DNA of 64,000 nucleotides from IMGVR_UViG_3300022752_000015:1-64000; one strand, 5' to 3'. Counted from the stretch's first letter, positions 1 to 13,546 are shown. The notes: generated from the sequence alone by a model not told the origin. Made by a program: numbers and translations.

Positions 1-202
1 TGAAGATGGAACGTAGATCCTCATAACCAATCACAATGGAATTGGTTCCTCTACCACAGGAATCGGTAACACTGATGTTAAACTTGTTCCAGTGTGGGTT
101 GAAGGTGATACTGAACTGAGTTCCTTCGAGATCTTGGAATTCAGTACTGAGGTTCTGGAGTTTCTTTGGTACTGAGGTACCGAGTTTCTTCTTGGCCTTC
201 AT
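1..202 (-). CDS. hypothetical early protein, 3' end beyond window
   Basis: ATG at 202, 6 nt downstream of the conserved early promoter; open to the window edge. Confidence 0.55.
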   Translation of the reverse strand, partial: MKAKKKLGTSVPKKLQNLSTEFQDLEGTQFSITFNPHWNKFNISVTDSCGRGTNSIVIGYEDLRSIF

Positions 203-208
203 GTTTCC

Positions 209-238
209 ATCCTATCATCCTCGGGTGGAATTTTTCAC
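209..238 (-). promoter_or_regulatory. early promoter GTGAAA-N18-TAGGAT, leaderless ATG 6 nt downstream
   Basis: same hexamers and spacing recur upstream of many minus-strand genes. Confidence 0.75.
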
Positions 239-505
239 CGGATCAACATCACTCATGAAAAGGTAGAATTCCTTAACACCTTCGTAATCCCAAACACCAA
301 CTCGAATTCCAAAACGTTTAACCGCACCGATCCAGGAACCGTGAGGAGATCTGGAACTCTGTGGAGAATCATAGGTAAATCCTCCTGCGGAAATCCAGGA
401 ACCTCCTCTTTCCACTCCACGAAATCCTCTATTCTTACCGGATTTTATTGGTGGTTGAGAGGAAATATTTCCGTGTGGATCTCGGCCGAGAACCTCAAGG
501 TTCAC
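215..505 (-). CDS. hypothetical protein
   Basis: GTG start overlapping the stop of 502..1002 by 4 nt. Confidence 0.5.
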   Translation of the reverse strand: MNLEVLGRDPHGNISSQPPIKSGKNRGFRGVERGGSWISAGGFTYDSPQSSRSPHGSWIGAVKRFGIRVGVWDYEGVKEFYLFMSDVDPVKNSTRG

Positions 506-1002
506 CCTTCCAACTTCCTCATGTTCCATATCTTTTCCGGGTTGTATTCCAAGGAATATCGAATAGATCCACCTTCACTCTTCTCGGGGATCTGTGATTC
601 AATCTCTCCGATGAGTTGGGAATGATACTGAGGATCCATTTCGATTTCCCATGGAACACCTTCACCATCCTTCACCACAACCTTCACACCAACCTTTGGA
701 GGTGGTTCAGGAATATTTTCATCATCATCATCCGGTTCAACACCAACGAATTCGATGAATTTCTGGAAGTATTCCTGGATTAGATCCGAATCACGTTTAG
801 GATCAACCCCAAACCAACTTCCATCCCATTCATTACACCTCCACTTCCAAAAATCGATCGCTTCAGAGTTCGATAGTGTAACTCCGAATAACCGGTGAAC
901 TTCGGATTTGATGTGATCCACATCATCCTGTTCATAGTAGATCCCAGAATTTTGGAGCCTAACATTAAAGGTTTGAGTTACCAGTTCTTGGTTGATCTTC
1001 AT
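502..1002 (-). CDS. hypothetical acidic protein
   Basis: 166-aa ORF with SD; only one Ala. Confidence 0.75.
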   Translation of the reverse strand: MKINQELVTQTFNVRLQNSGIYYEQDDVDHIKSEVHRLFGVTLSNSEAIDFWKWRCNEWDGSWFGVDPKRDSDLIQEYFQKFIEFVGVEPDDDDENIPEPPPKVGVKVVVKDGEGVPWEIEMDPQYHSQLIGEIESQIPEKSEGGSIRYSLEYNPEKIWNMRKLEG

Positions 1003-1006
1003 TGTT

Positions 1007-1180
1007 TCACCCTTCCTCCTTCACCTTCTCCAGTTCCTTACGAACCACGGTGTGTATCCCCAGGATTATTTCATCCTGAACCTCATAACCATAAACAAGA
1101 TCGTTTGCCTCGTTGGGATTCAAAACAATAGTGATTCCCTCCAACATACCATTCTTATCGTAGCTTCTCCTGGCTTCCAT
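1007..1180 (-). CDS. hypothetical protein (57 aa, below ORF-track cutoff)
   Basis: fills the gap in frame; coupled to the upstream stop. Confidence 0.55.
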   Translation of the reverse strand: MEARRSYDKNGMLEGITIVLNPNEANDLVYGYEVQDEIILGIHTVVRKELEKVKEEG

Positions 1181-1545
1181 CACCCCTCCTTCTTCTCCCT
1201 CAATTCCTTCATGCTTTCCACCAGGATCTTCTGTAGGTTTTCCATCTCCTCCGGGCTCAAGGAATCCAACTTTTCCATGATGGAATACTTCATTTTTCGG
1301 ATTAGAAGAGGATCCGTGATTGGAAAGGATTTGGTTCCTCTCTCCTCTCTTCCCTTCACATCCATGTAAAGGTTAGAATCACCACCGAATTCCTTGCAAG
1401 GATTAGGAATATCCACCTCACTCCACCCATTCTCACAACGGTTACACCCATAAACATGTGTGCTTGAAACCCCATCATCATTCATGAATGAGGTGTGTTG
1501 AATTGTTCCGGAATCACACTTTCCACACTTATCATTACCGCTCAT
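1180..1545 (-). CDS. zinc-ribbon protein
   Basis: CGKC...CNRC pairs at the N-terminus; start chosen at MSGNDK. Confidence 0.6.
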   Translation of the reverse strand: MSGNDKCGKCDSGTIQHTSFMNDDGVSSTHVYGCNRCENGWSEVDIPNPCKEFGGDSNLYMDVKGREERGTKSFPITDPLLIRKMKYSIMEKLDSLSPEEMENLQKILVESMKELREKKEG

Positions 1546-1729
1546 TGTTCTTCTCCAACTCCACCATGTTTCCATTGATATACACGAAACGATTGAAACT
1601 CAAATCGTTTGGATTATGGAAAACCTCCTTGGTGTAGGTAACGTTCCATTGTTCTCCGCTCGGATCATATTTCTTCATGATGTGGAGGAACTTCGCAACC
1701 GTTTCGAATTCTTCTTTGCTGATCTTCAT
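1535..1729 (-). CDS. hypothetical protein
   Basis: GGAG SD before MKISKEEF. Confidence 0.55.
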   Translation of the reverse strand: MKISKEEFETVAKFLHIMKKYDPSGEQWNVTYTKEVFHNPNDLSFNRFVYINGNMVELEKNNER

Positions 1730-1739
1730 GGCTTCTCCT

Positions 1740-1943
1740 TCACAGGGGTGTTGCATAACCAACGATCTTGTGGTGGATTTCCGAGAGGAGAATCTTGTAC
1801 CCCTCAACCTGGCTCCTCAGATTTCCAATGCAAACCTGATGATCCGGATGGAAATGTTTTCCATTGAACTCAATGAACTCGGAATCGTTTGTGATGTTAA
1901 CCTTACAGTGAGAACAGTTTCGTACAGGGTTTTTCTTCTTCAC
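1740..1943 (-). CDS. small putative Zn-binding protein
   Basis: CSHC...HxxH..C pattern; directly downstream of an early promoter, with AGGAG SD. Confidence 0.6.
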   Translation of the reverse strand: MKKKNPVRNCSHCKVNITNDSEFIEFNGKHFHPDHQVCIGNLRSQVEGYKILLSEIHHKIVGYATPL

Positions 1944-1960
1944 TTTTCTTCTCCTTGATC

Positions 1961-1990
1961 AAGGTACCACATGAGGTGGAGGAATTTCAC
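1961..1990 (-). promoter_or_regulatory. early promoter GTGAAA-N18-TACCTT
   Basis: consensus match with extended -10 TG. Confidence 0.65.
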
Positions 1991-2313
1991 TCATCACCTT
2001 TCATTCTTTTTTCCACCATATCCAGGTAGAATGGAAGGGCACCTTGAGGAGGAGGTTCCACGGTGAATAAATTCCTTGCAACCTGATTGTAGTTAATCCT
2101 ACCTCCGGGCCTCCCCAATGTATCGAGGAAGGGATTGTAAAAATCACCCCATAAAACCTCCACCTGATTATCGGAGGTTTTTCTCACAATGGTTCCGGTG
2201 GAACTGGAGTAAAGGAACTTCACCATATCTCCAATTTTCCAATCAACCTCATCGAGTAGTTTTCCATCGAGGGTGAGGAGGGAGGAGATGAATACCGTGT
2301 TTATTTCACTCAT
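1987..2313 (-). CDS. KOW/SH3-like protein
   Basis: IGDMVKF...GTIV...VEVLW. Confidence 0.65.
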   Translation of the reverse strand: MSEINTVFISSLLTLDGKLLDEVDWKIGDMVKFLYSSSTGTIVRKTSDNQVEVLWGDFYNPFLDTLGRPGGRINYNQVARNLFTVEPPPQGALPFYLDMVEKRMKGDE

Positions 2314-2503
2314 GATATTTTTGAATATCCTCGGGGAGGATGATCTGATCGGGGCGGAAGAACAACTGTTTTCCACACGATAAAACGGTTAGGTAGGAAA
2401 CGATCCCATAGGGGTTTCTATTCACCTCCAGGATTATCCCCGCCCGGGGAGGTTCACCGAAGAATTTGGTGAAGATTAAATCTCCAATACTACTTTGATT
2501 CAC
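2306..2503 (-). CDS. KOW/SH3-like mini-protein
   Basis: IGDLIF...GIILEV...YLTVL. Confidence 0.7.
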   Translation of the reverse strand: MNQSSIGDLIFTKFFGEPPRAGIILEVNRNPYGIVSYLTVLSCGKQLFFRPDQIILPEDIQKYHE

Positions 2504-2714
2504 TTAGTATCTCCACGTTCCACCGATCCGCGATGAGATGGTGGTAGTTGATACCATCCTCACACAACAAGGTTACATTCAAACCATGGTTTCCATTGAA
2601 ACCTTCCACCGGAGGAACCTCTTCACATTCCAACAACAAACCGGTTATGGTACCGTTTTTCAGTGGAAAATCCTGGTATTTCCAGGTGAAACGAATCAGA
2701 TCACCCCGTTTCAC
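2490..2714 (-). CDS. KOW/SH3-like mini-protein
   Basis: MKRGDLIRF...GLLLE...VEIL. Confidence 0.7.
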   Translation of the reverse strand: MKRGDLIRFTWKYQDFPLKNGTITGLLLECEEVPPVEGFNGNHGLNVTLLCEDGINYHHLIADRWNVEILSESK

Positions 2715-2904
2715 TTAGTATCTCCACCGAACCTGGTGATACATAGTAACTCTTTCCCTCCTCGGGGATGATTACTTTAAGGTAACACATCTTACCGGAA
2801 ATCAATTCCTCATCCCGATATTCCTCAATGATTCCAACCGCTCCGCGGGGAGGAAGAAAACCAGGTAACTTACCTGTGAAAAGAACCAGATCACCGGGTT
2901 TCAT
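2701..2904 (-). CDS. KOW/SH3-like mini-protein
   Basis: MKPGDLVLF...GIIEE...YLKVI...VEIL. Confidence 0.75.
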   Translation of the reverse strand: MKPGDLVLFTGKLPGFLPPRGAVGIIEEYRDEELISGKMCYLKVIIPEEGKSYYVSPGSVEILSETG

Positions 2905-2911
2905 TGTGGGG

Positions 2912-3097
2912 TTATACCTTCACCAGTTCGTAGTTGTAGAACCAGGTTAACCTCTCACGGAATAGAACCCGATAACGATGTGATCCACCGTGATGTTCCT
3001 GTGAATCTGGATGAACCACTATTCCAAAACCAAGGATCTCGGATGGATTATCCCAATCCTCAACCTTCACAATATCTCCATTCTCAAGGTTGCTCAC
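2912..3097 (-). CDS. KOW/SH3-like mini-protein
   Basis: NGDIVKV...GIVV...YRVLF...ELVKV. Confidence 0.75.
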   Translation of the reverse strand: MSNLENGDIVKVEDWDNPSEILGFGIVVHPDSQEHHGGSHRYRVLFRERLTWFYNYELVKV

Positions 3098-3309
3098 CTT
3101 ATCACCTTAACCCTTTCATACCTCACCCACCCGATGGATTCACCGGTGATTATTTTGATGTATGGAACATCGATGTTGGAATAACATGAATCTATAATGA
3201 TTCCAATGTGATCCTGTGGAAAGGTTGAGGTATACGTACCTAATGGGTTAACTGAATCAAAGATGTGTAGGTTTCCAACGGTAGGTTGAACAAGGTTTCC
3301 AGGGTTCAC
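3094..3309 (-). CDS. KOW/SH3-like mini-protein
   Basis: MNPGNLV...GIII...IGWV. Confidence 0.75.
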   Translation of the reverse strand: MNPGNLVQPTVGNLHIFDSVNPLGTYTSTFPQDHIGIIIDSCYSNIDVPYIKIITGESIGWVRYERVKVIR

Positions 3310-3512
3310 TTCACCACCTCGATCTCATATTTCTCACCGATTCGATTGATTGGAATGTAGAAAATCTTCCCAGTTCCATTCTCAAGAACATCATAGAAAT
3401 CGGTGTTGTGTTGATGTGATTCACCTATAACAACACCACCGTTTCTCAACTCATCCCGGTGGGATTTGGAGGTGATAAAGATTCGTATCATATCTCCTGG
3501 AAACAATCTCAA
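3306..3512 (-). CDS. KOW/SH3-like mini-protein
   Basis: PGDMIRI...GVVI...YDVL...IEVV. Confidence 0.75.
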   Translation of the reverse strand: MRLFPGDMIRIFITSKSHRDELRNGGVVIGESHQHNTDFYDVLENGTGKIFYIPINRIGEKYEIEVVK

Positions 3513-3718
3513 GAGATCCTCTCGGTGAAGTTGTTCTCCATGAATTCCATCAACTCATTTCCCCATAGAACCTTATAGTAATCCCCAAATTCATCCCCGT
3601 TTCTATGAACACCAACCACCAAACCAGGCCCGGTGATCCTGAATTTTTCCTTATGGTTTCCAACCCAGGTATGAATTAGATCGGTACACATCCATAACTC
3701 ACCTGTGTTTGGTTTCAT
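3509..3718 (-). CDS. KOW/SH3-like mini-protein
   Basis: TGELW...GLVV...YKVLW. Confidence 0.7.
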   Translation of the reverse strand: MKPNTGELWMCTDLIHTWVGNHKEKFRITGPGLVVGVHRNGDEFGDYYKVLWGNELMEFMENNFTERIS

Positions 3719-3939
3719 GCCACCAACTCCAGTTTACCTCTTCCAATCCAACCGATTCCATGTGAGGTTAGAATCCTACACATCCCCCGGAAAAGAACCC
3801 CATTTTGGGTGGTTTGTAGAAGTATTCCAATCTCTCCAGGGGGTACAACCGGGCCATGGGAATCATGTGGAACATCGATATCCGGAACCAGTTGAAAATT
3901 GTTGAAAGAGTTAACTCGGATTAGATCACCTGGAATCAT
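3715..3939 (-). CDS. KOW/SH3-like mini-protein
   Basis: MIPGDLIRV...GILL...GIGWI...LELV. Confidence 0.75.
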   Translation of the reverse strand: MIPGDLIRVNSFNNFQLVPDIDVPHDSHGPVVPPGEIGILLQTTQNGVLFRGMCRILTSHGIGWIGRGKLELVA

Positions 3940-4184
3940 TGATGATCTTCCTTATCTAACCAAGAATCATAAACCCAACCCTTACCGTAACCAGGAAAAA
4001 GAATCAAGTGCATTTTTCCAACCGTTTCCAAAAATATCCCGCTGGAGTTGGTTGGAATCTCAAAACAATCGCTCATCTTATATGAGCGATATGGTGTGTT
4101 ACTCCGGTTCTCGTGAAAAACCCTGAGGAATTCCTTGGCCCAGGAGCATCTATGATGAACCACAAATATATCACCACGAATCAT
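3936..4184 (-). CDS. KOW/SH3-like mini-protein
   Basis: MIRGDIFVV...GIFL...GWV. Confidence 0.7.
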   Translation of the reverse strand: MIRGDIFVVHHRCSWAKEFLRVFHENRSNTPYRSYKMSDCFEIPTNSSGIFLETVGKMHLILFPGYGKGWVYDSWLDKEDHQ

Positions 4185-4380
4185 TGATTCTCTCCACCGC
4201 CCAACGGTTACTCCACAACCAAACCAACCCATTCGGGCCTAAAACATTGTATTCGGAGGGGCTCCATTCCAACCTTCTCCTTCCAATGAACAACCCAAAA
4301 AACGGTGGGGAATTCACTTCAGGGTTGTTGTGAAGTTTGAAAGGTTCACATATAACAGGATCTCCAACACACAACACCAT
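4171..4380 (-). CDS. KOW/SH3-like mini-protein
   Basis: VGDPV...GLFI...YNVL. Confidence 0.65.
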   Translation of the reverse strand: MVLCVGDPVICEPFKLHNNPEVNSPPFFGLFIGRRRLEWSPSEYNVLGPNGLVWLWSNRWAVERINDSW

Positions 4381-4391
4381 GGTTAAACTCC

Positions 4392-4421
4392 AATGTAAAC
4401 CATCCCATCCCGGTTTTACAC
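4392..4421 (-). promoter_or_regulatory. early promoter variant GTGTAA-N18-TACATT
   Basis: near-consensus with correct spacing, upstream of 4171..4380. Confidence 0.5.
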
Positions 4422-4679
4422 CGTGTGGAGTTCCAAATGGTTCTCACTCACCCACCCGAAAACCTCACCACCGAAAAACAGAACCTTACACTGATCCTCT
4501 TTGATTTCAATCACAACACCAATCGATCCGCTTGAAATTTTACCTATGAAACTCCGAGGAACTATGGATTCTCCAACCCAACGGATCTTCTCCGGGAAAT
4601 CGTAAATTCGGTGTAGATTTGTTGGGTGATTTTTAAGAGTTAAAATCCTTACAGAATCACCGGGTTTAAACCTGTTCAC
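4416..4679 (-). CDS. KOW/SH3-like mini-protein
   Basis: KPGDSVRI...GVVIEI...CKVLF...GWV..NHLEL; zero Ala. Confidence 0.75.
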   Translation of the reverse strand: MNRFKPGDSVRILTLKNHPTNLHRIYDFPEKIRWVGESIVPRSFIGKISSGSIGVVIEIKEDQCKVLFFGGEVFGWVSENHLELHTV

Positions 4680-4857
4680 CTGGAATCACCTCACACTTCC
4701 TCTCCACCCAATCCAATCCCCACCCACGGATCTCCTGTGTTCTTGGGTTAAGAACATGAACCAGGTTGATCTCCTTGTTTATCTCCAACACGAGGCAAAC
4801 ATCACCATCGAAATAATCCTCGATTACCACCATATCCCCGATCCGAAGTTTTCTCAC
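4666..4857 (-). CDS. KOW/SH3-like mini-protein
   Basis: RIGDMVVI...LVLEI...VHVL. Confidence 0.75.
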   Translation of the reverse strand: MRKLRIGDMVVIEDYFDGDVCLVLEINKEINLVHVLNPRTQEIRGWGLDWVERKCEVIPGEQV

Positions 4858-5060
4858 CCCAACACCTCAACCTCATCCTCCGGAACCAGGAGAATATCCT
4901 GAATTTCTCCATTGGTTTCCAACATCCGAATATTGAAAGATTTTTTATGGGTATCTCTGATTGGTGCCACGGGGCGAAAATGAAGTAGAACACCGGTGAT
5001 GGTGGGGAACTTCCACTTCTTGTGGAACCGAGTGATTCGAAGAAGATTTCCTATGTTCAT
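4854..5060 (-). CDS. KOW/SH3-like mini-protein
   Basis: MNIGNLLRI...GVLL...VEVL. Confidence 0.7.
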   Translation of the reverse strand: MNIGNLLRITRFHKKWKFPTITGVLLHFRPVAPIRDTHKKSFNIRMLETNGEIQDILLVPEDEVEVLG

Positions 5061-5314
5061 CTCACCAACTCCAGGATTTTCCTATCCGCCCAACCTACTC
5101 CACCGGGGGTTAACAACTTGATGTAGAAGAAATCCTTGTTCTCTGGAAACTCCGCGGTGAGTAGAACCAAACCTACATCCTTCCCATAGAAGAGTGTTTT
5201 CGTGGTGATTAGATAACCTCTATCATCCCAACAACGGGTTTCTCCTCCGTAAAGTTCAGCGGGATGGGGATCCCATGAATCCATTCGAAGTTTTACAATT
5301 GAACCTATGTTCAT
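5057..5314 (-). CDS. KOW/SH3-like mini-protein
   Basis: MNIGSIVKL...GLVLL...GGVGW...LELV. Confidence 0.75.
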   Translation of the reverse strand: MNIGSIVKLRMDSWDPHPAELYGGETRCWDDRGYLITTKTLFYGKDVGLVLLTAEFPENKDFFYIKLLTPGGVGWADRKILELVR

Positions 5315-5580
5315 CCCACCAACTCCAGATCACATCTTTTAATCCAACCTATCCCACCGGGGCACAATACCTTCACCCAAAAACTGGTGGGTAGAGAATC
5401 ATAAACATCATTGAGAATGTATCTTTGTTCCAGAATCACTCCCACCTCGGTGTAACGGAACCTCCCGGTGTGGTTCTTCCTGTAGATTGAAGTGAAATCA
5501 GGTGGATCATCCCAGAGGATTTTGTGATCCTCGTTACCTTCCATCTCGGGAATTAAACGAACTTGTGATCCGGGTTTCAC
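5311..5580 (-). CDS. KOW/SH3-like mini-protein
   Basis: GTG start (MKPGSQVRL)...GVILE...GGIGW...LELV. Confidence 0.75.
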   Translation of the reverse strand: MKPGSQVRLIPEMEGNEDHKILWDDPPDFTSIYRKNHTGRFRYTEVGVILEQRYILNDVYDSLPTSFWVKVLCPGGIGWIKRCDLELVG

Positions 5581-5828
5581 CTTTGAAACTCCTTCACCCA
5601 ACTCTGATGTGCCCAACCAACACCACGAGGGGTTAATAACTTCACATACTGGAGGTACCTATTCGTAATGATTCGAGTTTCAAGAACCAATCCTAGATCC
5701 GAAAAACCGAATGGAATATCGGTGGGGATGAGGTTATTGGTGATTGGATCCATTAGATCCGAATGGTATAACCAATGGGTGGTACCGGTATCTCCACCGT
5801 TCACACCAACAACATCACCGGGTTTCAC
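5577..5828 (-). CDS. KOW/SH3-like mini-protein
   Basis: GTG start (MKPGDVV)...GLVLE...GVGW. Confidence 0.75.
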   Translation of the reverse strand: MKPGDVVGVNGGDTGTTHWLYHSDLMDPITNNLIPTDIPFGFSDLGLVLETRIITNRYLQYVKLLTPRGVGWAHQSWVKEFQR

Positions 5829-6016
5829 TGGAACTTCTCCAACCATCTAACCGGAAACATTCTTATCCTATCACCCAATCCCTTTACATATTCACCGGGA
5901 AGATTGGGGGTGGTGTACCTCTCACCGAGGATAACCACCAACATTCCATGGAGATAATCATCCCGTGGATGGGCACCCGGTGGAACTGAAACTCGATATA
6001 GATCCCCTTTTCTCAT
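5825..6016 (-). CDS. KOW/SH3-like mini-protein
   Basis: MRKGDLYRV...GMLVVIL...WLEKF. Confidence 0.7.
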   Translation of the reverse strand: MRKGDLYRVSVPPGAHPRDDYLHGMLVVILGERYTTPNLPGEYVKGLGDRIRMFPVRWLEKFQ

Positions 6017-6216
6017 ACGATCTTCCTGATGGTATCACTGGGATGATGAACCAGTTTATCACCTCTTAGAACCACCCACCAATCAGCGGAACCGTTTTCA
6101 CCTGAACTCCTGTATCCATCATCCCAAAGTGATTCACGGATGATTATCCCGGTTGAGTGCGGATCATCCTCATCAAGAAACTCCGGAAGGATTTCAACAA
6201 CATCTCCGGGTTTCAT
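6013..6216 (-). CDS. KOW/SH3-like mini-protein
   Basis: MKPGDVVEI...GIII...WVVL. Confidence 0.75.
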   Translation of the reverse strand: MKPGDVVEILPEFLDEDDPHSTGIIIRESLWDDGYRSSGENGSADWWVVLRGDKLVHHPSDTIRKIV

Positions 6217-6416
6217 GGTGCCTCCGAGAGGAGTGTTAGGTTTTCCCATATGAAAGGAATGAAATCTTCGTTCCAGAAAACGATACAATCACACTCACCT
6301 GCAACCTGATCTCCCCATTCATCCAGTGGAACCTTATCACTCCAGAATATCCCCACGCGGGGTTCATGTGGTTCCAGAAAATCCGCGGAGATTAAAACCA
6401 GATCTCCGGGTTTCAC
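6213..6416 (-). CDS. KOW/SH3-like mini-protein
   Basis: MKPGDLVLI...GIF...CIVFW. Confidence 0.75.
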   Translation of the reverse strand: MKPGDLVLISADFLEPHEPRVGIFWSDKVPLDEWGDQVAGECDCIVFWNEDFIPFIWENLTLLSEAP

Positions 6417-6598
6417 TGGAGATTCCTAAAGATATTTCTGAATCCATTCATCTCCCACCTCACGGTGGAGTTTCCGAGTAGAACCTCAACCATGTTCCAG
6501 GAAACACGGAGAACCACACCGATCTCAGGGGTGTAACGGTGGATAACCAGGGATCCAGGTACCACCTGGTTCACACTGAGGATATCATCGTTTCTCAC
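6413..6598 (-). CDS. KOW/SH3-like mini-protein
   Basis: PGSLV...GVVL...VEVL. Confidence 0.7.
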   Translation of the reverse strand: MRNDDILSVNQVVPGSLVIHRYTPEIGVVLRVSWNMVEVLLGNSTVRWEMNGFRNIFRNLQ

Positions 6599-6801
6599 CG
6601 GATCACCTCTATGTAGTATGATTCCACTGGGTAACGGGTTATCCTCCCATCGGGATCGATAACCTTTATTTTTTCGTTTTCACCACCGATCTCAAAGTTT
6701 TCGTGTTCCAGGTAGATCCCAAACTTCCAACCGGTTTCACGGTAAACCGGATCCAATAGATCGATTCGGTGGATGATTTTGAGAAGAGAACCGGGTTTCA
6801 T
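6595..6801 (-). CDS. KOW/SH3-like mini-protein
   Basis: MKPGSLLKI...GIYL...IKVI...IEVI. Confidence 0.75.
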   Translation of the reverse strand: MKPGSLLKIIHRIDLLDPVYRETGWKFGIYLEHENFEIGGENEKIKVIDPDGRITRYPVESYYIEVIR

Positions 6802-7007
6802 TTTGGAAGTGTTCCGATGGGTGGTGTGGTTGAGATGTTGTGTTCCTGATATTCCAGTTTCTCACCGGTGAGTGGATTGAGAACCACATACCATGGTGTG
6901 GAGGAGTAGGTAGGTTGGAAAATATCGGAGATGATTACCGGTGTGTGGGGGTGAATGTATAGGGAACCGATGATAAAAACCAGATCTCCGAGTTGAATAT
7001 CCTTCAT
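6798..7007 (-). CDS. KOW/SH3-like mini-protein
   Basis: LGDLVFI...VII...YVVL. Confidence 0.7.
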   Translation of the reverse strand: MKDIQLGDLVFIIGSLYIHPHTPVIISDIFQPTYSSTPWYVVLNPLTGEKLEYQEHNISTTPPIGTLPK

Positions 7008-7219
7008 TCCACCACCTTCACGTTTCCTACATAACACCAACCAATATTTTCTCCACTGATAACCTTAACATCGGAGCGATAAACATCAACAACCAAACCG
7101 ATTCCGGTTAGAAGCCCGTGGTATTTCCTGGTTCCAGGAGGAACCGATCCGAGTGGGGATGAGAATAACTTGGAGGAACTTCCTGGGGAATTGTTGGTTA
7201 CAATATCACCGGGCCTCAT
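7004..7219 (-). CDS. KOW/SH3-like mini-protein, close paralog of 10234..10467
   Basis: MRPGDIV; shared SKLFSSP and N(I/V)GWC motifs. Confidence 0.75.
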   Translation of the reverse strand: MRPGDIVTNNSPGSSSKLFSSPLGSVPPGTRKYHGLLTGIGLVVDVYRSDVKVISGENIGWCYVGNVKVVE

Positions 7220-7397
7220 TGATGATTTTCCAGTTGGGTGTTACCATTTCGGTTTGAACCTCACCGTTGTGAAGAATGGTACACCAGTGTTCGTGGTTGA
7301 AGATGATTGGAGTTTCCAGTACCATTCCGATGTAGGTGTGCCATGAACAGGTTCCGGAACCCCACTTTTTAAATTCCACAAGATCACCTACATTCAT
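7206..7397 (-). CDS. KOW/SH3-like mini-protein
   Basis: MNVGDLVEF...GMVLE. Confidence 0.75.
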   Translation of the reverse strand: MNVGDLVEFKKWGSGTCSWHTYIGMVLETPIIFNHEHWCTILHNGEVQTEMVTPNWKIINEAR

Positions 7398-7602
7398 TCC
7401 AGATCTCCTCCAGGTAGTTCCAGTTTACCCATCCGATCTTCCCGTTGTAGAGAACCTTGATCCAGGTACCATTCGGAGGTGAAACGATCAAGAGGGATGA
7501 TCCGATTGGAATTCCATCATCCGGTAGGTGTTTGTGAACCTTATTCACCGTGGAATAGAAGTTGGTGAAACAAAGGTTTTTGGCAAGTGAACCGGGAAGC
7601 AT
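7384..7602 (-). CDS. KOW/SH3-like mini-protein, leaderless
   Basis: MLPGSL...IKVL...IGWV...LEEI. Confidence 0.75.
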   Translation of the reverse strand: MLPGSLAKNLCFTNFYSTVNKVHKHLPDDGIPIGSSLLIVSPPNGTWIKVLYNGKIGWVNWNYLEEIWNECR

Positions 7603-7608
7603 GTTTCA

Positions 7609-7638
7609 AGTATATCATCCCACGGTGGGGAATTTCAC
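7609..7638 (-). promoter_or_regulatory. early promoter GTGAAA-N18-TATACT, leaderless ATG 6 nt downstream
   Basis: consensus match. Confidence 0.8.
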
Positions 7639-7640
7639 TG

Positions 7641-7814
7641 TTACCCCACCAGGTGTTTTTCGTTTTTGAATTGAGTGAGAACCTCCCATAGGAGTTGTGG
7701 AAGGGAATCCTGGATGTGAAGGTATGATGAGTAGGAACAACACCACACCGGGCCGGGAGAAATAACTCCAGGTTTCTCTTTCCAGATTTTTACCGAACGT
7801 AGGAACTTAAACAT
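7641..7814 (-). CDS. hypothetical protein (57 aa)
   Basis: fills the intergenic gap on the coding strand. Confidence 0.35.
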   Translation of the reverse strand: MFKFLRSVKIWKEKPGVISPGPVWCCSYSSYLHIQDSLPQLLWEVLTQFKNEKHLVG

Positions 7815-7815
7815 T

Positions 7816-8181
7816 TTAAGTGAAATCCCCCACGATTAAATCCCAGCTTCCGGATCCATGCCCAACACAGTGATCCCCAACACTTCTGTGTAGTTCCATT
7901 CCTTCCGGGCACCACCGCCCTGGGCCACGTGTGGTGATGATTTTGATCATATCCTCGGGGAGAACCTCTTCATCATATTCATTTAGGATCTTTGTGTTGG
8001 GTTTACCCCATTCGGTGATCCAATCCTCCAGGGAATTGATGCCCCTCTCGGGGATGATGTGCAGGGAGAAACACCAACCGTAGGAGGATTTTCCGATGTG
8101 AAGAACCTCCTCATCGGGATCGTGTTTACAGGTTACACATTTCGAAGGTGATTCTTTGTGTAGGTAGTAGTTTGTTCCCAT
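7816..8181 (-). CDS. conserved phage hypothetical protein
   Basis: MGTNYY...LHIGKSSYGWCFSLH motif; AGGA SD. Confidence 0.7.
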   Translation of the reverse strand: MGTNYYLHKESPSKCVTCKHDPDEEVLHIGKSSYGWCFSLHIIPERGINSLEDWITEWGKPNTKILNEYDEEVLPEDMIKIITTRGPGRWCPEGMELHRSVGDHCVGHGSGSWDLIVGDFT

Positions 8182-8182
8182 C

Positions 8183-8425
8183 TCACTTTCCTCCTAAAAT
8201 CTCTTCCACTCGAAGTTCAGATTCACCACTTCTTTCCATTGCTCTCCATGGTAATGATCCACGTTCCTCCCGGTGAAGTTGATCCACCGAATCGATCTTA
8301 TCAACCTTATACACCGATGAACCTCTAATCTCCTCGGATAGGTTCCGGAAACCGATACTCTCAGCCTCGTGTGGATCAACACAATCCACAAGGATATCTG
8401 TGTGAAATGTTACTCGGTACAACAT
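8183..8425 (-). CDS. hypothetical protein, paralog of 12332..12619
   Basis: YRVxFxTD...EAExIGF...ERGSLPWR shared. Confidence 0.75.
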   Translation of the reverse strand: MLYRVTFHTDILVDCVDPHEAESIGFRNLSEEIRGSSVYKVDKIDSVDQLHREERGSLPWRAMERSGESELRVEEILGGK

Positions 8426-8431
8426 GATTCA

Positions 8432-8461
8432 ATCTTATCCTCCACCGGTTGGGTTTTTCAC
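8432..8461 (-). promoter_or_regulatory. early promoter GTGAAA-N18-TAAGAT, leaderless ATG 6 nt downstream
   Basis: consensus match. Confidence 0.8.
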
Positions 8462-8616
8462 CGGAGGTTAATCAAAAAATCCACTTCGAATGGTACGTAA
8501 ACATATTCCAACCTGCCGGGCCCTGATACCCATGAGGTTCCAGTTGGGGAAGGAGGTGAGGAACCCGGTGGAACTTCTCAACAACAAACGAAATCCACTT
8601 CGAATTCGAGGGAGGT

Positions 8617-8799
8617 TCACTTCTCATCCTCCTCCACTTCATAGTAACCTACCACATCACAGATCCTCTTGATGAAATCCTGGGAGTTTAGGATGATCCG
8701 ATCCGATTGGTAGATAACCTCGGAACAACTGATACCATTCTCACGGATGAAATCCATGCAAACCTGAAGTAGTTCATCCCTCATTCCTGATTTCTTCAT
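8617..8799 (-). CDS. hypothetical protein
   Basis: coupled to 8796..9311 by a 4-nt overlap. Confidence 0.65.
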   Translation of the reverse strand: MKKSGMRDELLQVCMDFIRENGISCSEVIYQSDRIILNSQDFIKRICDVVGYYEVEEDEK

Positions 8800-9311
8800 G
8801 ATTTACCCATCAAACCATTCAACCAACTCTCGTTATCCTCAGGAACAAAACTTCCAACCGGATCCCATAGAACCGTGAAACGATCCTCCTTCAACATATC
8901 CACCAGATCCTCCTCACTCCAGTTCTCGTGGGAGGGAATGAGGTGGTAGGTATCACCGATGAACTGGGGAACCTTGTTGATGATCTGCGGGATGTTGTTC
9001 ACATTGAGGAACACCGTGTGAAGTGAGAAGAGGTTATCCGGTTTCTCGTTCACATCGATCAACTCGGATGCGATCTTTTCCACCTTGAGAAGTTCCAGGA
9101 TGATCCCATCCGCACCGCTCTCGGAATATCGAGTTGCACTTCCGATATCGGCCACCCAACCTTGCCCGGATTCACTGTAGAACATAGGTGAACCCCAGGA
9201 GTTATTCTCCCCATCGAGGGATGAGTGGAACCTCAAAACGAAGTTCTTCTTCTCGGTGGATTTCTTGGTGGGGTTCTTCTTCGTGGAACTGGAGGATTTC
9301 TTGGTTGCCAT
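8796..9311 (-). CDS. hypothetical protein with Lys/Ser-rich N-terminal tail, leaderless
   Basis: MATKKSSSSTKK; start 6 nt after a -10 box. Confidence 0.75.
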   Translation of the reverse strand: MATKKSSSSTKKNPTKKSTEKKNFVLRFHSSLDGENNSWGSPMFYSESGQGWVADIGSATRYSESGADGIILELLKVEKIASELIDVNEKPDNLFSLHTVFLNVNNIPQIINKVPQFIGDTYHLIPSHENWSEEDLVDMLKEDRFTVLWDPVGSFVPEDNESWLNGLMGKS

Positions 9312-9315
9312 GATG

Positions 9316-9519
9316 TTATCCTATCCTATCGAGGTGGGGATTTTCACCGGGGAGGGAGATGTAGTGATCAGAGATCATTTGTTTCCTACCGGTGTGGAGG
9401 AGAACGGTGAAGAAACGGTGATCCATTGAGATATCGTTGTGTTCCTCGATGATTATCCCGAGTGTGGGGGAGATCATCCTCTGGGGATTGGTGTAGAGGA
9501 TGAGTTGCCCGATTCTCAC
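9316..9519 (-). CDS. KOW/SH3-like mini-protein
   Basis: MRIGQLI...GIII...FTVLL; paralog of 10061..10237. Confidence 0.7.
   Translation of the reverse strand: MRIGQLILYTNPQRMISPTLGIIIEEHNDISMDHRFFTVLLHTGRKQMISDHYISLPGENPHLDRIG
9318..9347 (-). promoter_or_regulatory. early promoter GTGAAA-N18-TAGGAT, leaderless ATG 6 nt downstream
   Basis: consensus match. Confidence 0.8.
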
Positions 9520-9704
9520 TAGATCTCCTGGAGGTCTGATTCTCGGCAGTGAAGAATTCCACGATCTGGAAACAATACCTTCCAGTGTGGGAACGGATCA
9601 TTTCCACGGAATTCGTAGGGGATGTGTTCGAGGATGATCCCAACATCACCGGGAAGATCCATTTGGAATCGGTACCTCCATACCACCATGTTACCAACCC
9701 TCAT
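9519..9704 (-). CDS. KOW/SH3-like mini-protein
   Basis: MRVGNMVVW...GIILE...WKVLF...DLQEI. Confidence 0.75.
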   Translation of the reverse strand: MRVGNMVVWRYRFQMDLPGDVGIILEHIPYEFRGNDPFPHWKVLFPDRGILHCRESDLQEI

Positions 9705-9891
9705 CCGTGATCCTCCTTGATCCATGTGGGTTTAACCACCTCATACTACCATCACCCAATAAAACTTTACATACATTGGAAATTGGATCAGGATCCTCAT
9801 GGATATCAATGATCAACCCAAGGATATAAATTATTTCCTTGGTGATGGGATTCCTTCCGTTCCTAAATTCTCTAAGTTCACCAACCTTCAT
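9691..9891 (-). CDS. KOW/SH3-like mini-protein
   Basis: MKVGEL...GLII...CKVLL. Confidence 0.75.
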   Translation of the reverse strand: MKVGELREFRNGRNPITKEIIYILGLIIDIHEDPDPISNVCKVLLGDGSMRWLNPHGSRRITDEGW

Positions 9892-10064
9892 TCCAACACC
9901 TGGAATAATTCATCTTTTAAGTGGATTGAGATCCTCCTGATTTTATCTCCATCGAGAATAACCAATGAATACCTCTCAATATCAACCTGAAGTATTAGTT
10001 GAATATCGGTATTCCATCCACTTATCCTTTTACTGGATGTTTTTATTAGATCTCCACGTTTCAC
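9888..10064 (-). CDS. KOW/SH3-like mini-protein (58 aa, not in ORF track)
   Basis: GTG start MKRGDLIK; 4-nt overlaps on both sides. Confidence 0.7.
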   Translation of the reverse strand: MKRGDLIKTSSKRISGWNTDIQLILQVDIERYSLVILDGDKIRRISIHLKDELFQVLE

Positions 10065-10237
10065 TGTAGAAAATCCAGGTAGTGGGTGGAGATTAGTTTA
10101 ACAATACCGTTTTCCAGTAGAACATTGTAGAATTGTTGATCCAGGGATATTCCAAGTTTTTCCTGGATGATTATCCCGATGAGGGGTTGAGGAATTCTAG
10201 TATTATTTCGGTAACGAACCAAGGAACCGGGTTTCAT
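10061..10237 (-). CDS. KOW/SH3-like mini-protein
   Basis: MKPGSLVRY...GIII...YNVLL. Confidence 0.75.
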   Translation of the reverse strand: MKPGSLVRYRNNTRIPQPLIGIIIQEKLGISLDQQFYNVLLENGIVKLISTHYLDFLQ

Positions 10238-10467
10238 TCCACCACTCGGAGGTTCCCCGCGAAACACCAACCAACATTTCCATCACAGGTGATCTTCACC
10301 TCGGAACCATGTTGTTCCAGAACCATACCAACCCCGGATAGATACCCGGTGGTGAAACGTGAAACATAACCATTGTTCCCAACCGTGATTGGAGAGGAAA
10401 ATAGTTTGGATCTGGAATTGGTTCCAAGGTTGGTTACCAAAGTTCCGGGGAGATATGTGGTGTTCAT
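10234..10467 (-). CDS. KOW/SH3-like mini-protein
   Basis: PGTLV...GMVLE...NVGWC...LRVV. Confidence 0.75.
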   Translation of the reverse strand: MNTTYLPGTLVTNLGTNSRSKLFSSPITVGNNGYVSRFTTGYLSGVGMVLEQHGSEVKITCDGNVGWCFAGNLRVVE

Positions 10468-10673
10468 GGTGTTGTTAGTAATCGGTTTTTTATCCAACCA
10501 ACCTTACCACGGTTCGTTAGGATTTTTGAGGATGATTTTCTGGATTCAATGATGATAACAATCTCGGGGGCTCTTATCCAATCCACTGCCACGCATCCTA
10601 GTGGAATTTCATCCATACACACATCCCAAACATAGGTTTGAACTGAACAGAGGTATAGTTCATTGGGTTTCAT
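10464..10673 (-). CDS. KOW/SH3-like mini-protein
   Basis: MKPNEL...VIIIE...KIL...VGWI. Confidence 0.7.
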   Translation of the reverse strand: MKPNELYLCSVQTYVWDVCMDEIPLGCVAVDWIRAPEIVIIIESRKSSSKILTNRGKVGWIKNRLLTTP

Positions 10674-10885
10674 TGGTGAACCTTGTACATGTATGAAACT
10701 TGGCTCCACCCAATTTTCTCCCCAATTAACCATTGAACGAAACCGTTTTGGGAGGGGGTGATGATGATCCCGGTGGAGGGTGGAATTTCCGGTGGGAATG
10801 TTGGGCCTGAGTATAGATCAGGATGTACCGGAAAGAATTGAAGTACCACCGAGGATTTAACCAGGGTTCCAGGGGAATATTTCAT
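10670..10885 (-). CDS. KOW/SH3-like mini-protein
   Basis: PGTLV...GIII...IGW. Confidence 0.7.
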   Translation of the reverse strand: MKYSPGTLVKSSVVLQFFPVHPDLYSGPTFPPEIPPSTGIIITPSQNGFVQWLIGEKIGWSQVSYMYKVHQ

Positions 10886-11055
10886 TGGAGAACCTTGAAG
10901 TTCCTTTTGAGGAAGAAGTAGGAGTAGATGGAGGTGGTTCCATTGTTCCACATGATTTCACATGCTCCGGTGGGGGATTCGGAGAGGAGAAGGGCGATAC
11001 CGGGTGGAACATGGTGGTGAGGTTCGATTGAGATGAGAAGGGAACCAGGAACCAT
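10882..11055 (-). CDS. KOW/SH3-like mini-protein (not in ORF track)
   Basis: MVPGSLLI...EIMWNNG...FKVL; 4-nt overlap. Confidence 0.6.
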   Translation of the reverse strand: MVPGSLLISIEPHHHVPPGIALLLSESPTGACEIMWNNGTTSIYSYFFLKRNFKVLQ

Positions 11056-11067
11056 GGTTATATGGTA

Positions 11068-11241
11068 TCATGTGGAATGTGGGTTTTTCACCACGGTGAA
11101 GTTTTTACTGATCCAATTGTATCCCCAACGATCCATGGTTTGGAGCCTGGGGTTGAAGAGGATAACAATGTTGAGGTGTTTGTGTACCTCGAGAACAAGG
11201 TTGGGATCTTCGTAGAAAATAACGAGATCACCGGGGCTCAA
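11068..11241 (-). CDS. KOW/SH3-like mini-protein (not in ORF track)
   Basis: TTG start MSPGDLVIF...LVLEV. Confidence 0.6.
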   Translation of the reverse strand: MSPGDLVIFYEDPNLVLEVHKHLNIVILFNPRLQTMDRWGYNWISKNFTVVKNPHST

Positions 11242-11414
11242 TGAACCACCTCGAACATCCGAGAGATGAAATCAACAGAGAATCGTGATGTGGTTCCGTT
11301 GTGGGCCCACATGATATCGAACCACCCGTTGGTTTCCTGGGAGATGATAACCGCGAGGGTTTCGTTGGGAAACTCACCATTGATGTGAAATCGTATCAGA
11401 TCTCCCCTCTTCAC
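11238..11414 (-). CDS. KOW/SH3-like mini-protein (not in ORF track)
   Basis: GTG start MKRGDLIRF...FDIMW...FEVV. Confidence 0.7.
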   Translation of the reverse strand: MKRGDLIRFHINGEFPNETLAVIISQETNGWFDIMWAHNGTTSRFSVDFISRMFEVVH

Positions 11415-11617
11415 AACACCACCTCGAACAAATCGCGGATAACATCATCACCAATTCTACGGGTGATTCCATTGGATAGGTGAACGAGGTAGTTAACCGT
11501 GTTCCACCTCTCATCGATGAGAACCTCGAGAATCAATCCTGATGTTGGATTTCCGTTGCGAACCTGGTAATCGTTGGGTAGGAGAAGTGTTCCGATGGGA
11601 AGTGGATCAGGTTTCAC
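11411..11617 (-). CDS. KOW/SH3-like mini-protein
   Basis: IGTLL...GLILEV...YLVHL...FEVV. Confidence 0.75.
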   Translation of the reverse strand: MKPDPLPIGTLLLPNDYQVRNGNPTSGLILEVLIDERWNTVNYLVHLSNGITRRIGDDVIRDLFEVVL

Positions 11618-11846
11618 TGAGAACCTCTATGTCATCCGAGATTTCACCATCCATCAACCAGGATTTTCCAATCACACCACCGTGGGAGGTGAAGAGAACC
11701 TTGAGTTGGTTGTACTTGGAACCACGGTGCTTGGGGATGAAATCGATTACGATTCCGAACCAATCACCACAAACGTTATCGAATAGTTGGTGTTGATATT
11801 CACCGGGAGAGGTGGGTTTGTTTCGAATCAAAGAACCGATTTTCAC
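11607..11846 (-). CDS. KOW/SH3-like mini-protein
   Basis: MKIGSLI...GIVI...LKVLF...IEVL. Confidence 0.75.
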   Translation of the reverse strand: MKIGSLIRNKPTSPGEYQHQLFDNVCGDWFGIVIDFIPKHRGSKYNQLKVLFTSHGGVIGKSWLMDGEISDDIEVLSET

Positions 11847-12079
11847 CTGAGAACCTCGAGAATTTCTTCCATCTCATCATTCAAGAGGAGTGCCCTCATC
11901 ACCAGGTTATCGGGTGTAACGAGGGCCTCGATGGTGGTGTAGTGAGTTGTGTAGTGGGATGGTGGAGTTACCTTGAGAACCACCGCGATCCAATCGAAGT
12001 CCTGGGAGATGATTTCCCTGAAGATAGCCACACCGGATGTTTGGTATCGATTCCTTCGAAATAGATCACCAGGTTTCAT
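11843..12079 (-). CDS. KOW/SH3-like mini-protein
   Basis: MKPGDLF...VVLKV...LEVL. Confidence 0.75.
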   Translation of the reverse strand: MKPGDLFRRNRYQTSGVAIFREIISQDFDWIAVVLKVTPPSHYTTHYTTIEALVTPDNLVMRALLLNDEMEEILEVLR

Positions 12080-12360
12080 AGCTCCTCTTCAGGAATCACT
12101 CGAAAATCATGGGTGTGGTACCCGAATCGAACCAATCCATCGTTCCCCACGAAGATCCCATGGCCCTTCATCCCTGGGATTTCACCTAGGAAAAGTATTG
12201 GATTTCCGGGGCGAAGTGGGTACAACCTTTCATCCTGGGGAGGTGGAGTAAATACCACCAAAAATCCTGAGGTAATTCCTCTAGGGAAATTAACGGGATT
12301 TTTTAGGTGTTCATCCAGGGGTATCCATGTTTCAACCTGGTGTTTTTGGTAGATTGCCAT
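12076..12360 (-). CDS. hypothetical protein with SH3-like C-terminal half
   Basis: LFLGEIPGMKGHGIFV...GYHTHDFRVI; GAGG SD. Confidence 0.65.
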   Translation of the reverse strand: MAIYQKHQVETWIPLDEHLKNPVNFPRGITSGFLVVFTPPPQDERLYPLRPGNPILFLGEIPGMKGHGIFVGNDGLVRFGYHTHDFRVIPEEEL

Positions 12361-12619
12361 TTTGTGCCTCTCTGAGGATTTGTTCCACAGGTTTTTCACG
12401 TTCTCCGCGGAGATCTCGTTGGGTATCCCTCCATGGTAAGGAACCTCTTTCCCACCTGCGAACCTGATCCGGAGATTCTAGGAGTTTGATTGAGAAAACC
12501 TCGGATCCTCGGTTATCAACCTCATCGGTGAGGTGTTTGAACCCGATCATCTCGGCTTCTTTTTCATTTTCACATTCCACCAGGAGATCGGTGAGGAATG
12601 AGACTCGATAGATGGCCAT
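12332..12619 (-). CDS. hypothetical protein, paralog of 8183..8425
   Basis: YRVSFLTD...ERGSLPWR. Confidence 0.75.
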   Translation of the reverse strand: MAIYRVSFLTDLLVECENEKEAEMIGFKHLTDEVDNRGSEVFSIKLLESPDQVRRWERGSLPWRDTQRDLRGEREKPVEQILREAQNGNLPKTPG

Positions 12620-12627
12620 GGTGTTGT

Positions 12628-12656
12628 ATACTAATCCATTTTTAGTGGGTTTTCAC
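12628..12656 (-). promoter_or_regulatory. early promoter GTGAAA-N17-TAGTAT
   Basis: consensus match upstream of 12332..12619. Confidence 0.7.
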
Positions 12657-12862
12657 CGAATGATTTCAAGGAATTCGTTGGGGATCCACCCGTGGGCATT
12701 GGGGAATGCCACCTGGGAACGGTAAGAGTGTTGTTCCGTTATGATTCCGAGTGAACCATAGGGGATAATCAGGGATGAATTGATTCGATTGTTGAAGAGT
12801 TCCGTGTAGGGTATGGCACCACCGGTGTTACAAACCCTGATCAAGGTTCCTACTGGATACAT
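12653..12862 (-). CDS. KOW/SH3-like mini-protein
   Basis: VGTLIRV...GII...GWI...LEII. Confidence 0.7.
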   Translation of the reverse strand: MYPVGTLIRVCNTGGAIPYTELFNNRINSSLIIPYGSLGIITEQHSYRSQVAFPNAHGWIPNEFLEIIR

Positions 12863-13080
12863 GGGTGAATTTCCTGGAGATCCTTGGAATCGAAGGTGTG
12901 AACCATGGAGGTTGTTGGAACGAGACACCGGCAGAAGTACATGGTGTACTTGAATTCAACATCGATGATGAGGAGTGGTTGATCGTAGTAGGGTGAGGTG
13001 CGGTACTTCGTGAGCCTCACCATGGAACCCCTGTTGAATGGTGGGTTCACTGTTGAACCTCCTTCATGCCAACAGTACAA
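12850..13080 (-). CDS. KOW/SH3-like mini-protein (start uncertain)
   Basis: RGSMVRL...LLIIDV...DLQEI. Confidence 0.6.
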   Translation of the reverse strand: MYCWHEGGSTVNPPFNRGSMVRLTKYRTSPYYDQPLLIIDVEFKYTMYFCRCLVPTTSMVHTFDSKDLQEIHPCIQ

Positions 13081-13510: not shown

Positions 13511-13516
13511 GGTTTC

Positions 13517-13546
13517 ATTGTATCATGGGACGTGAGGGGATTTCAC
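13517..13546 (-). promoter_or_regulatory. early promoter GTGAAA-N18-TACAAT, leaderless ATG 6 nt downstream
   Basis: consensus match with extended -10 TG. Confidence 0.8.

Follow-up and report, generated by a model that had tools for sequence, protein, structure and literature searches.

The first 64,000 nucleotides (nt) of the 212,804-bp contig IMGVR_UViG_3300022752_000015 (Joint Genome Institute (JGI) contig Ga0214917_10000008) were analysed and are here called the window. The contig belongs to a 213-kb uncultivated phage, and the first 12.9 kb of the window are most of a ~14-kb island of about 50 small early genes from which the trinucleotides GAC and GTC (together GWC, with W = A or T) are almost absent and the dinucleotide 5'-GC-3' (GpC) is strongly reduced. 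Expected counts were derived from base composition unless stated otherwise. The island and its surroundings are laid out as follows.

1-12930, minus strand: main G(W)C-free island, with ~47 closely packed small open reading frames (ORFs) of 57-171 amino acids (aa).
12929-13053, minus strand: right island edge, at an overlapping stop/start (TGA/GTG near 13,050) of two co-oriented genes.
13054-14907, no strand: block of normal composition between depleted blocks, including a Gly/Ser-rich 283-aa ORF (13621-14472).
14908-15892, plus strand: mini-island, consisting of an intergenic/promoter region and the first 880 nt of a 429-aa ORF (15012-16301).
16311-19994, minus strand: neighbouring small-gene array with normal GWC and GC, taken as an internal control and including an SH3/KOW-like paralog (17682-17924).

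Between positions 1 and 12,900 GWC occurs four times (at 9534, 11631, 11999 and 12602), compared with 361 occurrences expected from base composition and 340 if it were as frequent as elsewhere in the window. An earlier note on this sequence had listed exactly these four positions against an expected few hundred, and the computed ratios are indeed far from 1. Its description of GpC as several-fold low was likewise borne out, with 118 observed and 662 expected (ratio 0.18). Outside the islands, GWC and GC frequencies in the window are normal. The loss within the island extends to all 16 NGWCN contexts; the four residual sites all lie inside ORFs, and promoter and intergenic DNA is equally clean. 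The longest GWC-free runs in the island measure 9,534 and 2,097 nt, while sites outside the islands are separated by 38 nt on average and by 410 nt at most (32482-32892, a stretch of borderline significance).

The depletion was dependent on spacing, G-N-C standing at 0.13 of expectation and GNNC at 0.71, and CpG (0.69) and TpA (0.55) were ordinary. No further avoided words beyond GC and GWC were found among the 4- and 5-mers of the island; GCGC was absent (34 expected) and AGCT was present three times (49 expected). GG/CC was enriched 1.48x, as were GAT/ATC and GTT/AAC, and GATC was enriched 2.7x because its halves GAT and ATC are themselves enriched. AC/GT showed no excess (0.955 of expectation). 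The G+C content of the island is ~45% (44-47%) versus ~41% in the adjoining DNA. The avoided words are closed under reverse complement (GAC/GTC; GC), so that they do not distinguish the two strands, and on the sense strand of partly depleted blocks the leftover GAC and GTC are about equal in number. Both properties fit recognition of double-stranded DNA.

The right end of the island is sharp, at ~12.93-13.05 kb. The gene upstream of this edge (13047-13261, an SH3/KOW-like 'MKPGSLIVV' paralog) has normal GWC and GC, whereas the genes downstream of it are purged. Past the normal block, which is kept in the relative L002 with normal GWC density there too, the mini-island contains 2 GWC compared with ~24 expected. 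The last ~410 nt of the 429-aa ORF, encoding its C-terminal domain, are of normal composition, and the DNA is normal from ~15.9 kb onward. The gradual relaxation from 12.9 to 16.3 kb described in the earlier note is thus replaced by a sharp end, a normal block and a mini-island. The control array holds 56 GAC and 59 GTC in 3.7 kb, and SH3/KOW-like paralogs, assigned by hidden Markov model membership, are present on either side of the right edge. The earlier view that the effect follows position and not gene family therefore holds for these paralogs, with the restriction that position here means island membership and not a proven distance from a genome end.

On the left, the contig starts within an island gene, the first gene (ATG at 202) running off the start, and the island probably goes on for ~1.5 kb (1.5-1.7 kb) past position 1 before it ends. 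The far (left) edge is visible in the relatives L066 and L016. The gene and 20-mer expected left of position 1 from L016 had no match at the far end of the window's contig, and the first 39 nt occur once in that contig, with no repeat elsewhere. JGI gene calls agree with the small minus-strand ORFs of the island.

The encoded proteins are altered to match. Alanine accounts for 1.16% of the ~47 island ORFs compared with 7.0% of 75 ORFs elsewhere in the window, and Gly, Pro, Trp and His are raised in the island proteins. Island Asp codons are GAT in 183 cases and GAC in one, GTC is used for 0 of 262 Val codons, and both words are depleted in all three codon phases. Dipeptides of Met or Trp followed by Thr, Pro, Gln or His, which force GAC or GC at the codon junction, number 2 in the island (~30 expected) and 98 outside it (~90 expected). 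Recoding the island proteins with the codon usage of the rest of the window gave 208±11 GWC and 264±14 GC, and shuffling the island's own synonymous codons gave 98±8 and 193±8, compared with the 3 and 86 observed; tuning is therefore present at the level of codons, of codon pairs and of the amino-acid sequence. Depletion across codon phases, codon pairs and dipeptides demonstrates a constraint that acts on the nucleic acid and not on codons or tRNAs. A tRNA- or codon-level cause was accordingly ruled out, since all three phases and the codon junctions are purged, and no tRNA genes were found in the window. The GC rule accounts for the scarcity of alanine and certain dipeptides as a side effect, in agreement with the earlier suggestion that a constraint at the DNA level costs these proteins their alanine.

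Island-bearing relatives were found through homologs of the 429-aa ORF, homologs of a 171-aa island protein and the promoter pattern described below. The same islands are carried by no fewer than 11 further contigs, which come from various samples and assemblers and of which several are 200-300 kb long; this answers the earlier call for a check of related phage genomes. The right edge is spanned independently by L002 (a 200-kb contig from another sample, 85% identity) and L040 (a 278-kb contig, 95.6%). The contig is not chimeric, because independent assemblies span both island edges; the mis-join raised as a concern in the earlier note is contradicted on the same grounds. L040 is collinear with the window, and its two ends meet at the point that corresponds to window position ~5.24 kb, so that L040 is a circular assembly cut open within the island. 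The two parts of its island, 8.7 and 5.6 kb, add up to ≈14.3 kb, and both edges are sharp. An ORF across the L040 end junction gave no information, island DNA being open in many frames.

The islands differ in layout. In the closest relatives the island is a single contiguous 8-14-kb block with sharp edges; in L016/L025 (274-kb scaffold) islands are split by 6 kb of GWC-rich DNA, and L007 carries an isolated 1.7-kb island with normal DNA on both flanks. Contigs of many independent assemblies break inside or beside islands.

GWC was the most depleted trinucleotide in 13 of 13 island segments from 11 contigs with a G+C content of 31-50% (ratio 0.01-0.16), a consistency that argues for a constant agent. 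The observed/expected ratio of GpC varied from 0.13 to 0.65 across island segments, so that 5'-GC-3' is also removed, less strictly and to a degree that differs by lineage. Among the islands checked, alanine was 1.0-1.4% in those strongly depleted of GC and 2.7% at a GC ratio of 0.44, compared with 5.7-7.2% in flanks. Partial depletion (0.1-0.3) was seen in several distant relatives, and no depletion in the distant homologs L006, L009, L010 and L013. L074 was discarded as a chance match. The two constraints come apart in a pentapeptide-repeat gene of the L016/L018 island (L016 9380-9988, L018 9350-9988), which keeps the Ala GCG codons that its fold requires yet has 0 GWC compared with 20 expected, the Asp codon of its (ADLxx)n repeats being GAT. 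This gene and the variable GC depletion indicate that GWC and GC are separable constraints, of which GWC is the universal one. A HIP1/cyanobacterial signature was ruled out as the explanation for this GC-rich, GWC-free gene once it was recognized as a pentapeptide-repeat protein. Proteins of this type imitate DNA and target gyrase or enzymes that bind DNA, and the L016/L018 protein is thus a candidate anti-defence or takeover factor.

Selection against GWC is ongoing. Over 3.7 kb of island that the window has in common with L021 (81-97% identity), the two sequences differ at 427 positions, and GWC is 0 in both; an equal number of random substitutions would be expected to create 39±5.5. The mini-island of the 429-aa ORF is kept in three lineages (the window, L002 at 91% and L007 at 80% nucleotide identity). 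The island is thus maintained free of GWC by continuing purifying selection that acts directly on the nucleic acid. Positions 1-514, 1481-1556 and 1940-2049 of the window are 94-100% identical to L016/L025, whereas other island genes are ~71% identical. Near-identical cassettes amid genes of ~70% identity indicate that cassettes move between genomes and have done so recently, and this movement may explain the frequent assembly breaks in islands.

No cultured relatives were found by megablast (1-13 kb and 20-44 kb) or by tblastn of the 171-aa protein against INPHARED, and a DnaE-type polymerase encoded in the window has ≤30% identity to any match. A distant relative encodes a sigma-70 region-2 protein (L011, 2441-3238), and later genes of the clade may be transcribed by a redirected host RNA polymerase. 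A separate observation concerns an unrelated phage, L075 (JGI 3300018416 contig Ga0181553_10000353, 39.6 kb; also L042 and L054), which is mostly 31-38% G+C and carries tail-fibre-like genes and two called genes of ~4,000 aa. In most of the 20 kb seen its GWC is at ~0.15 of expectation, with a weaker depletion in the last 3 kb, and leftover sense-strand GAC is more numerous than GTC. GpC in this type of phage is mostly normal, and alanine is ~7% in two short loci. GWC avoidance may thus reach beyond the island clade.

The operons of the island are preceded by a 39-nt promoter-like element, GTGAAA-N15-TGnTAnnAT-N6-ATG, identified as a repeat family and located by regular expression at the following positions.

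200-238, minus strand: promoter-like element.
7600-7638, minus strand: promoter-like element.
8423-8461, minus strand: promoter-like element.
9309-9347, minus strand: promoter-like element.
11053-11091, minus strand: promoter-like element.
13508-13546, minus strand: promoter-like element.

These are the only six matches in the window, all in gene orientation and none on the opposite strand. The element looks like a sigma-70-type extended -10 promoter. The canonical -35 sequence TTGACA contains GAC, and the element has GTGAAA in its place. It ends at the start codon, so that the mRNAs are probably leaderless. The element precedes operons in relatives as well and is found in depleted and normal blocks alike; promoter class as the divider of depleted from normal genes was ruled out for this reason.

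The best-conserved island family, with members in 32 clusters at 51-96% identity, is represented in the window by one gene.

8796-9311, minus strand: 171-aa island protein.

The 171-aa protein had no match in Pfam, PHROG or the Protein Data Bank (PDB), and its AlphaFold2 model, of moderate confidence (predicted local distance difference test score 71), had no Foldseek neighbour. Searches of 50 island proteins against Pfam and PHROGs returned no family, and PDB sequence searches with three proteins returned none. Many island proteins are SH3/KOW-like 'MxPGDL' paralogs. An early character is suggested by the sigma-70-like promoter family and the small orphan proteins, and the island genes are likely to encode takeover and anti-defence proteins.

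The 429-aa ORF is a full-length homolog of AgmX/PglI-type proteins of Sorangium and other Polyangiaceae (42% identity), lacks the FHA domain of its gliding-motility-associated homologs, and has a C-terminal domain 70-74% identical to the Polyangiaceae proteins. By sequence comparison this gene is host-derived, with its first 880 nt recoded to lose GWC and its last 410 nt left as they were. Its homology points to a high-G+C Polyangia myxobacterium as the probable host; the G+C content of the phage is about 40%.

Elsewhere in the window a nucleotide/sugar gene cluster occupies two intervals of the minus strand.

43640-50386 and 56165-60767, minus strand: dCMP-deaminase-like, thymidine-kinase-like and divergent thymidylate-synthase-fold (TS-fold) proteins, and two GalE-like epimerases.
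43640-50386 and 56165-60767, minus strand: further members, namely weak glycosyltransferase-like, GMP-reductase/IMPDH-like and cytidylyltransferase-like proteins.

The 332-aa TS-fold protein scored 82 bits against a cut-off of 327, and sugar epimerases and the weak glycosyltransferase-like match lie nearby. The cluster could serve DNA hypermodification or glycan synthesis. Four minus-strand genes are unusual for a phage: an FGE-sulfatase-like gene (23868-24800), an isocitrate-lyase/phosphoenolpyruvate-mutase family gene (31432-32676), a carbon-nitrogen hydrolase (38369-39130) and an Fe/Mn superoxide dismutase (42505-43233). On the plus strand, a 668-aa bactofilin-like gene (20966-22972) has a G+C content of 55%, far above its surroundings, and a 730-aa homolog of it adjoins the island in L021.

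The explanation we favour, tentatively and with slightly less than even confidence, is that the island is a site-free early expression module that escapes a clade-constant, locally acting activity with a 2-3-base site. Every G(W)C would be a target of this site-directed activity, which would be the same across the phage clade; such constancy suggests as its source either a phage gene or a trait found throughout the host lineage. It would operate at the very start of infection, while the island genes need to be expressed. The hazard would be additive per site and local, falling on single early cassettes, as template or as transcript, and not acting through one genome break. Its local nature is suggested by the split islands, the 1.7-kb island, the normal in-between block, the partial depletion and the edges inside an operon or ORF. 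Cassettes needed immediately, for anti-defence or takeover, would hence be purged, and the remaining genome would be served later, when the activity has been neutralised or replicated DNA is available. As the agent we would put first a site-specific modification or nick that the phage itself introduces at G(W)C in virion DNA and that host RNA polymerase reads poorly; next in preference would come a short-site DNA endonuclease combined with staged DNA entry, and last an mRNA endonuclease. With a divergent TS-fold gene and nucleotide/sugar genes in the window, DNA modification is possible, and the earlier note's suggestion that the island avoids a context-specific modification of the phage's own may still hold.

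Several observations weigh against this explanation. Island proteins match no nuclease, methylase or toxin family in the 64 of 213 kb read, and the same promoter type heads genes in depleted and in normal blocks. A GWC-bearing gene heads the operon that runs into the island, which is awkward for a template block if each site carries more than a small hazard. In three lineages the purge spares the 3' third of the 429-aa ORF, a pattern that fits none of the explanations considered here. The contiguous, sharp-edged 8-14-kb islands and the contig breaks would also fit a terminal segment that enters first. Lastly, we know of no phage DNA modification that hinders host RNA polymerase on early genes.

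Chlorella viruses provide a partial parallel for the proposed activity. Their enzymes recognize very short sites (CviJI RGCY, Nt.CviPII CCD, M.CviPI GpC), and the cutters and nickases among them are virus-encoded activities of 2-4-base specificity that degrade host DNA early, which demonstrates that specificities this short do occur. Unlike the island phages, these viruses protect themselves by methylation and not by loss of sites, and no such enzyme was found in the 64 kb. The takeover module of SPO1, within a 13-kb terminal redundancy, is similar in size and likewise consists of a few dozen small early genes with strong host-type promoters; no homology to it was detected, and we know of no report of a word purge in it.

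An unlikely alternative is entry in stages, as in T5. The island would lie at a genome end, perhaps as a long terminal repeat, would be the first DNA to enter and would have to survive a G(W)C-cutting endonuclease, either a host defence or the phage's own shredder of host DNA, and the rest of the genome would enter after the danger ends. The T5 record describes a 10.2-kb terminal repeat, the first-step-transfer (FST) DNA, with pre-early genes T5.001-T5.010 running leftward and the first major nick of the injection-stop region at 9,748. In the T5 literature, FST DNA alone is sensitive to EcoRI and CRISPR, so that sites count only there, and Davison proposed that T5 A1 is a nuclease whose sites FST DNA lacks. 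FST DNA is ~10 kb of small, mostly leftward early genes that must be free of restriction and CRISPR targets, and a segment without words carried by the rest is what is seen here (GWC 4 versus ~340-360, with the rest of the window normal). The island, too, is a contiguous 13-14 kb (5-7% of the genome) of leftward small early genes with sharp edges, its words are palindromic, and many independent contigs break inside or beside it. A very short site would suit the shredding of a ~70% G+C host, and a constant word would fit a phage-encoded nuclease.

The islands of the relatives are difficult to reconcile with such a scheme. In L016/L025 and L007, islands that are split or isolated (1.7 kb) are still under selection, and a single cut in the DNA between would defeat the purpose; such layouts also set the relatives apart from T5. 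The normal 1.9-kb block between depleted blocks in the window and L002 speaks against the scheme as well, and partial depletion to 0.1-0.3 would give no protection against a frequent cutter. In contrast to the T5 injection-stop border, the island edge falls at an overlapping stop/start with no large repeats found; neither a terminal repeat nor injection-stop repeats were seen, and L040 closes as a circle across the island. No A1, A2 or dmp families were found among the 50 island proteins in Pfam/PHROG searches. The FST DNA of T5 itself shows no comparable purge, its words shifting just 2-5-fold with no trinucleotide eliminated and no amino acid lost. Compared with the next 40 kb, T5 FST DNA (L023, 1-9600) is 5-fold poor in AGAG/CTCT (14 versus 73) and contains 1 versus 22 GAACC/GGTTC, mild shifts that may be of interest for the hypothesis that A1 is a nuclease.

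Somewhat less probable still is immunity at the RNA level, in which an early endoribonuclease would cut single-stranded RNA at G(N)C/GC and only site-free cistrons would be translated. Candidates for the enzyme are an abortive-infection toxin of the host, similar to MazF or MqsR, and an RNase with which the phage shuts off its host; the product of a site-free cistron would later neutralise it. Three-nucleotide sites are typical of mRNA interferases, for which motif-free escape mRNAs are known, and CpG/UpA suppression in animal RNA viruses (ZAP, RNase L) similarly purges 2-3-nt words from transcripts exposed to a sequence-specific factor that targets RNA. The unit of the purge does resemble a cistron or cassette, with edges at gene junctions in operons and with mosaic or partial depletion tolerated; GWC and GC are separable and lineage-variable, as two toxins would be, and transcripts of a high-G+C host would be shredded. 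However, interferase, ZAP and RNase L motifs are not reverse-complement symmetric, and the closed word set, with GAC and GUC equally avoided, would have to be a coincidence. Island promoter and intergenic DNA is just as clean as the genes, transcripts would still be cut within the unpurged 3' end of the 429-aa ORF, and no RNase or toxin fold was detected in the island-protein searches. To our knowledge, no block of early phage genes has been described with an escape of the interferase or ZAP kind.

Classical avoidance of many host restriction sites containing GC or GWC (GGWCC, GTCGAC, GCGC, AGCT and others) is very improbable. As in known cases, short palindromic words have been removed by selection, synonymously where possible, and the losses of GCGC and AGCT would fit, as would the tendency of G+C-rich hosts toward G+C-rich restriction sites. 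Known cases, however, concern 4-6-bp sites, are usually genome-wide and follow the enzymes of the host, whereas the words lost here are of 2-3 bp, regional and 99% removed, with protein composition reshaped and the same words avoided across the clade. No known 4-8-bp palindromic site was matched, GWC and GC being lost in all flanking contexts; the loss of all 16 NGWCN contexts would need more than 10 systems. Each 6-mer would occur ~3x in 13 kb at 45% G+C, and its removal would need no loss of alanine. The rest of the window is not depleted, and we know of no restriction enzyme with a 3-bp site. The proposal in the earlier note that first-injected DNA evades host restriction sites is weakened correspondingly: host specificities would be expected to differ between relatives, so the constancy of the avoided words speaks against it, as do the split and tiny islands and the L040 circle.

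We consider avoidance of primase start sites equally improbable. Phage primases recognise single-strand trinucleotides (T7 GTC, T4 GCT/GTT, SP6 GCA), and with no GTC on either strand no primer would start inside the island. The word length is right, the effect is strand-symmetric, local, additive and clade-constant, as a phage replisome would give, and a DnaE-type polymerase is present. One triplet, on the other hand, does not cover the GC depletion, no primase was seen in the 64-kb window, and we know of neither a benefit of nor a precedent for a primer-free early region.

Mutational decay by deamination of modified cytosine in GC/GWC, as the earlier note had also proposed, or a chimeric or foreign insert is the least credible explanation, for although GAT/ATC and GTT/AAC are enriched and the composition is unlike that of neighbouring DNA, decay is rejected by a G+C content that is higher and not lowered, by GT/AC at 0.955, by the compensating 1.48x GG/CC and by tuned codon pairs and dipeptides; independent assemblies from other samples that span both edges, and SH3/KOW-like paralogs to either side of the right edge, speak against a chimera or insert.

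Motif avoidance and site-free early DNA are already known. What is new here is a 2-3-base word, its 99% elimination, the cost at the level of the proteome, the island architecture and the clade-wide conservation; the papers searched on loss of GpC or of trinucleotides from early regions of phages yielded no precedent. In extent the footprint is extreme: 1% of a trinucleotide and 18% of a dinucleotide are left, and ~50 proteins have nearly lost one amino acid. Motif avoidance is a classic trace of sequence-specific immunity, and this trace matches no known enzyme specificity. It is possible, though on balance doubtful, that the phages recoded their early module in response to an as yet undescribed nucleic-acid-targeting system with the site G-W-C (and GpC), be it a new host immunity or a phage host-shutoff weapon or DNA mark.

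GWC/GC offers a precise handle for finding a new defence, counter-defence or DNA-modification system, and the island genes form a catalogue of likely takeover and anti-defence proteins. The islands are also a natural experiment in protein recoding, in which SH3-like domains and a host-derived gene are made almost without alanine, and they are relevant to a long-standing question raised by T5, namely how the early DNA of a phage evades nucleases that are active early. If a new GWC-targeting system does exist, the fact that an unrelated 40-kb phage avoids GWC across 20 kb or more would hint at a widespread agent.

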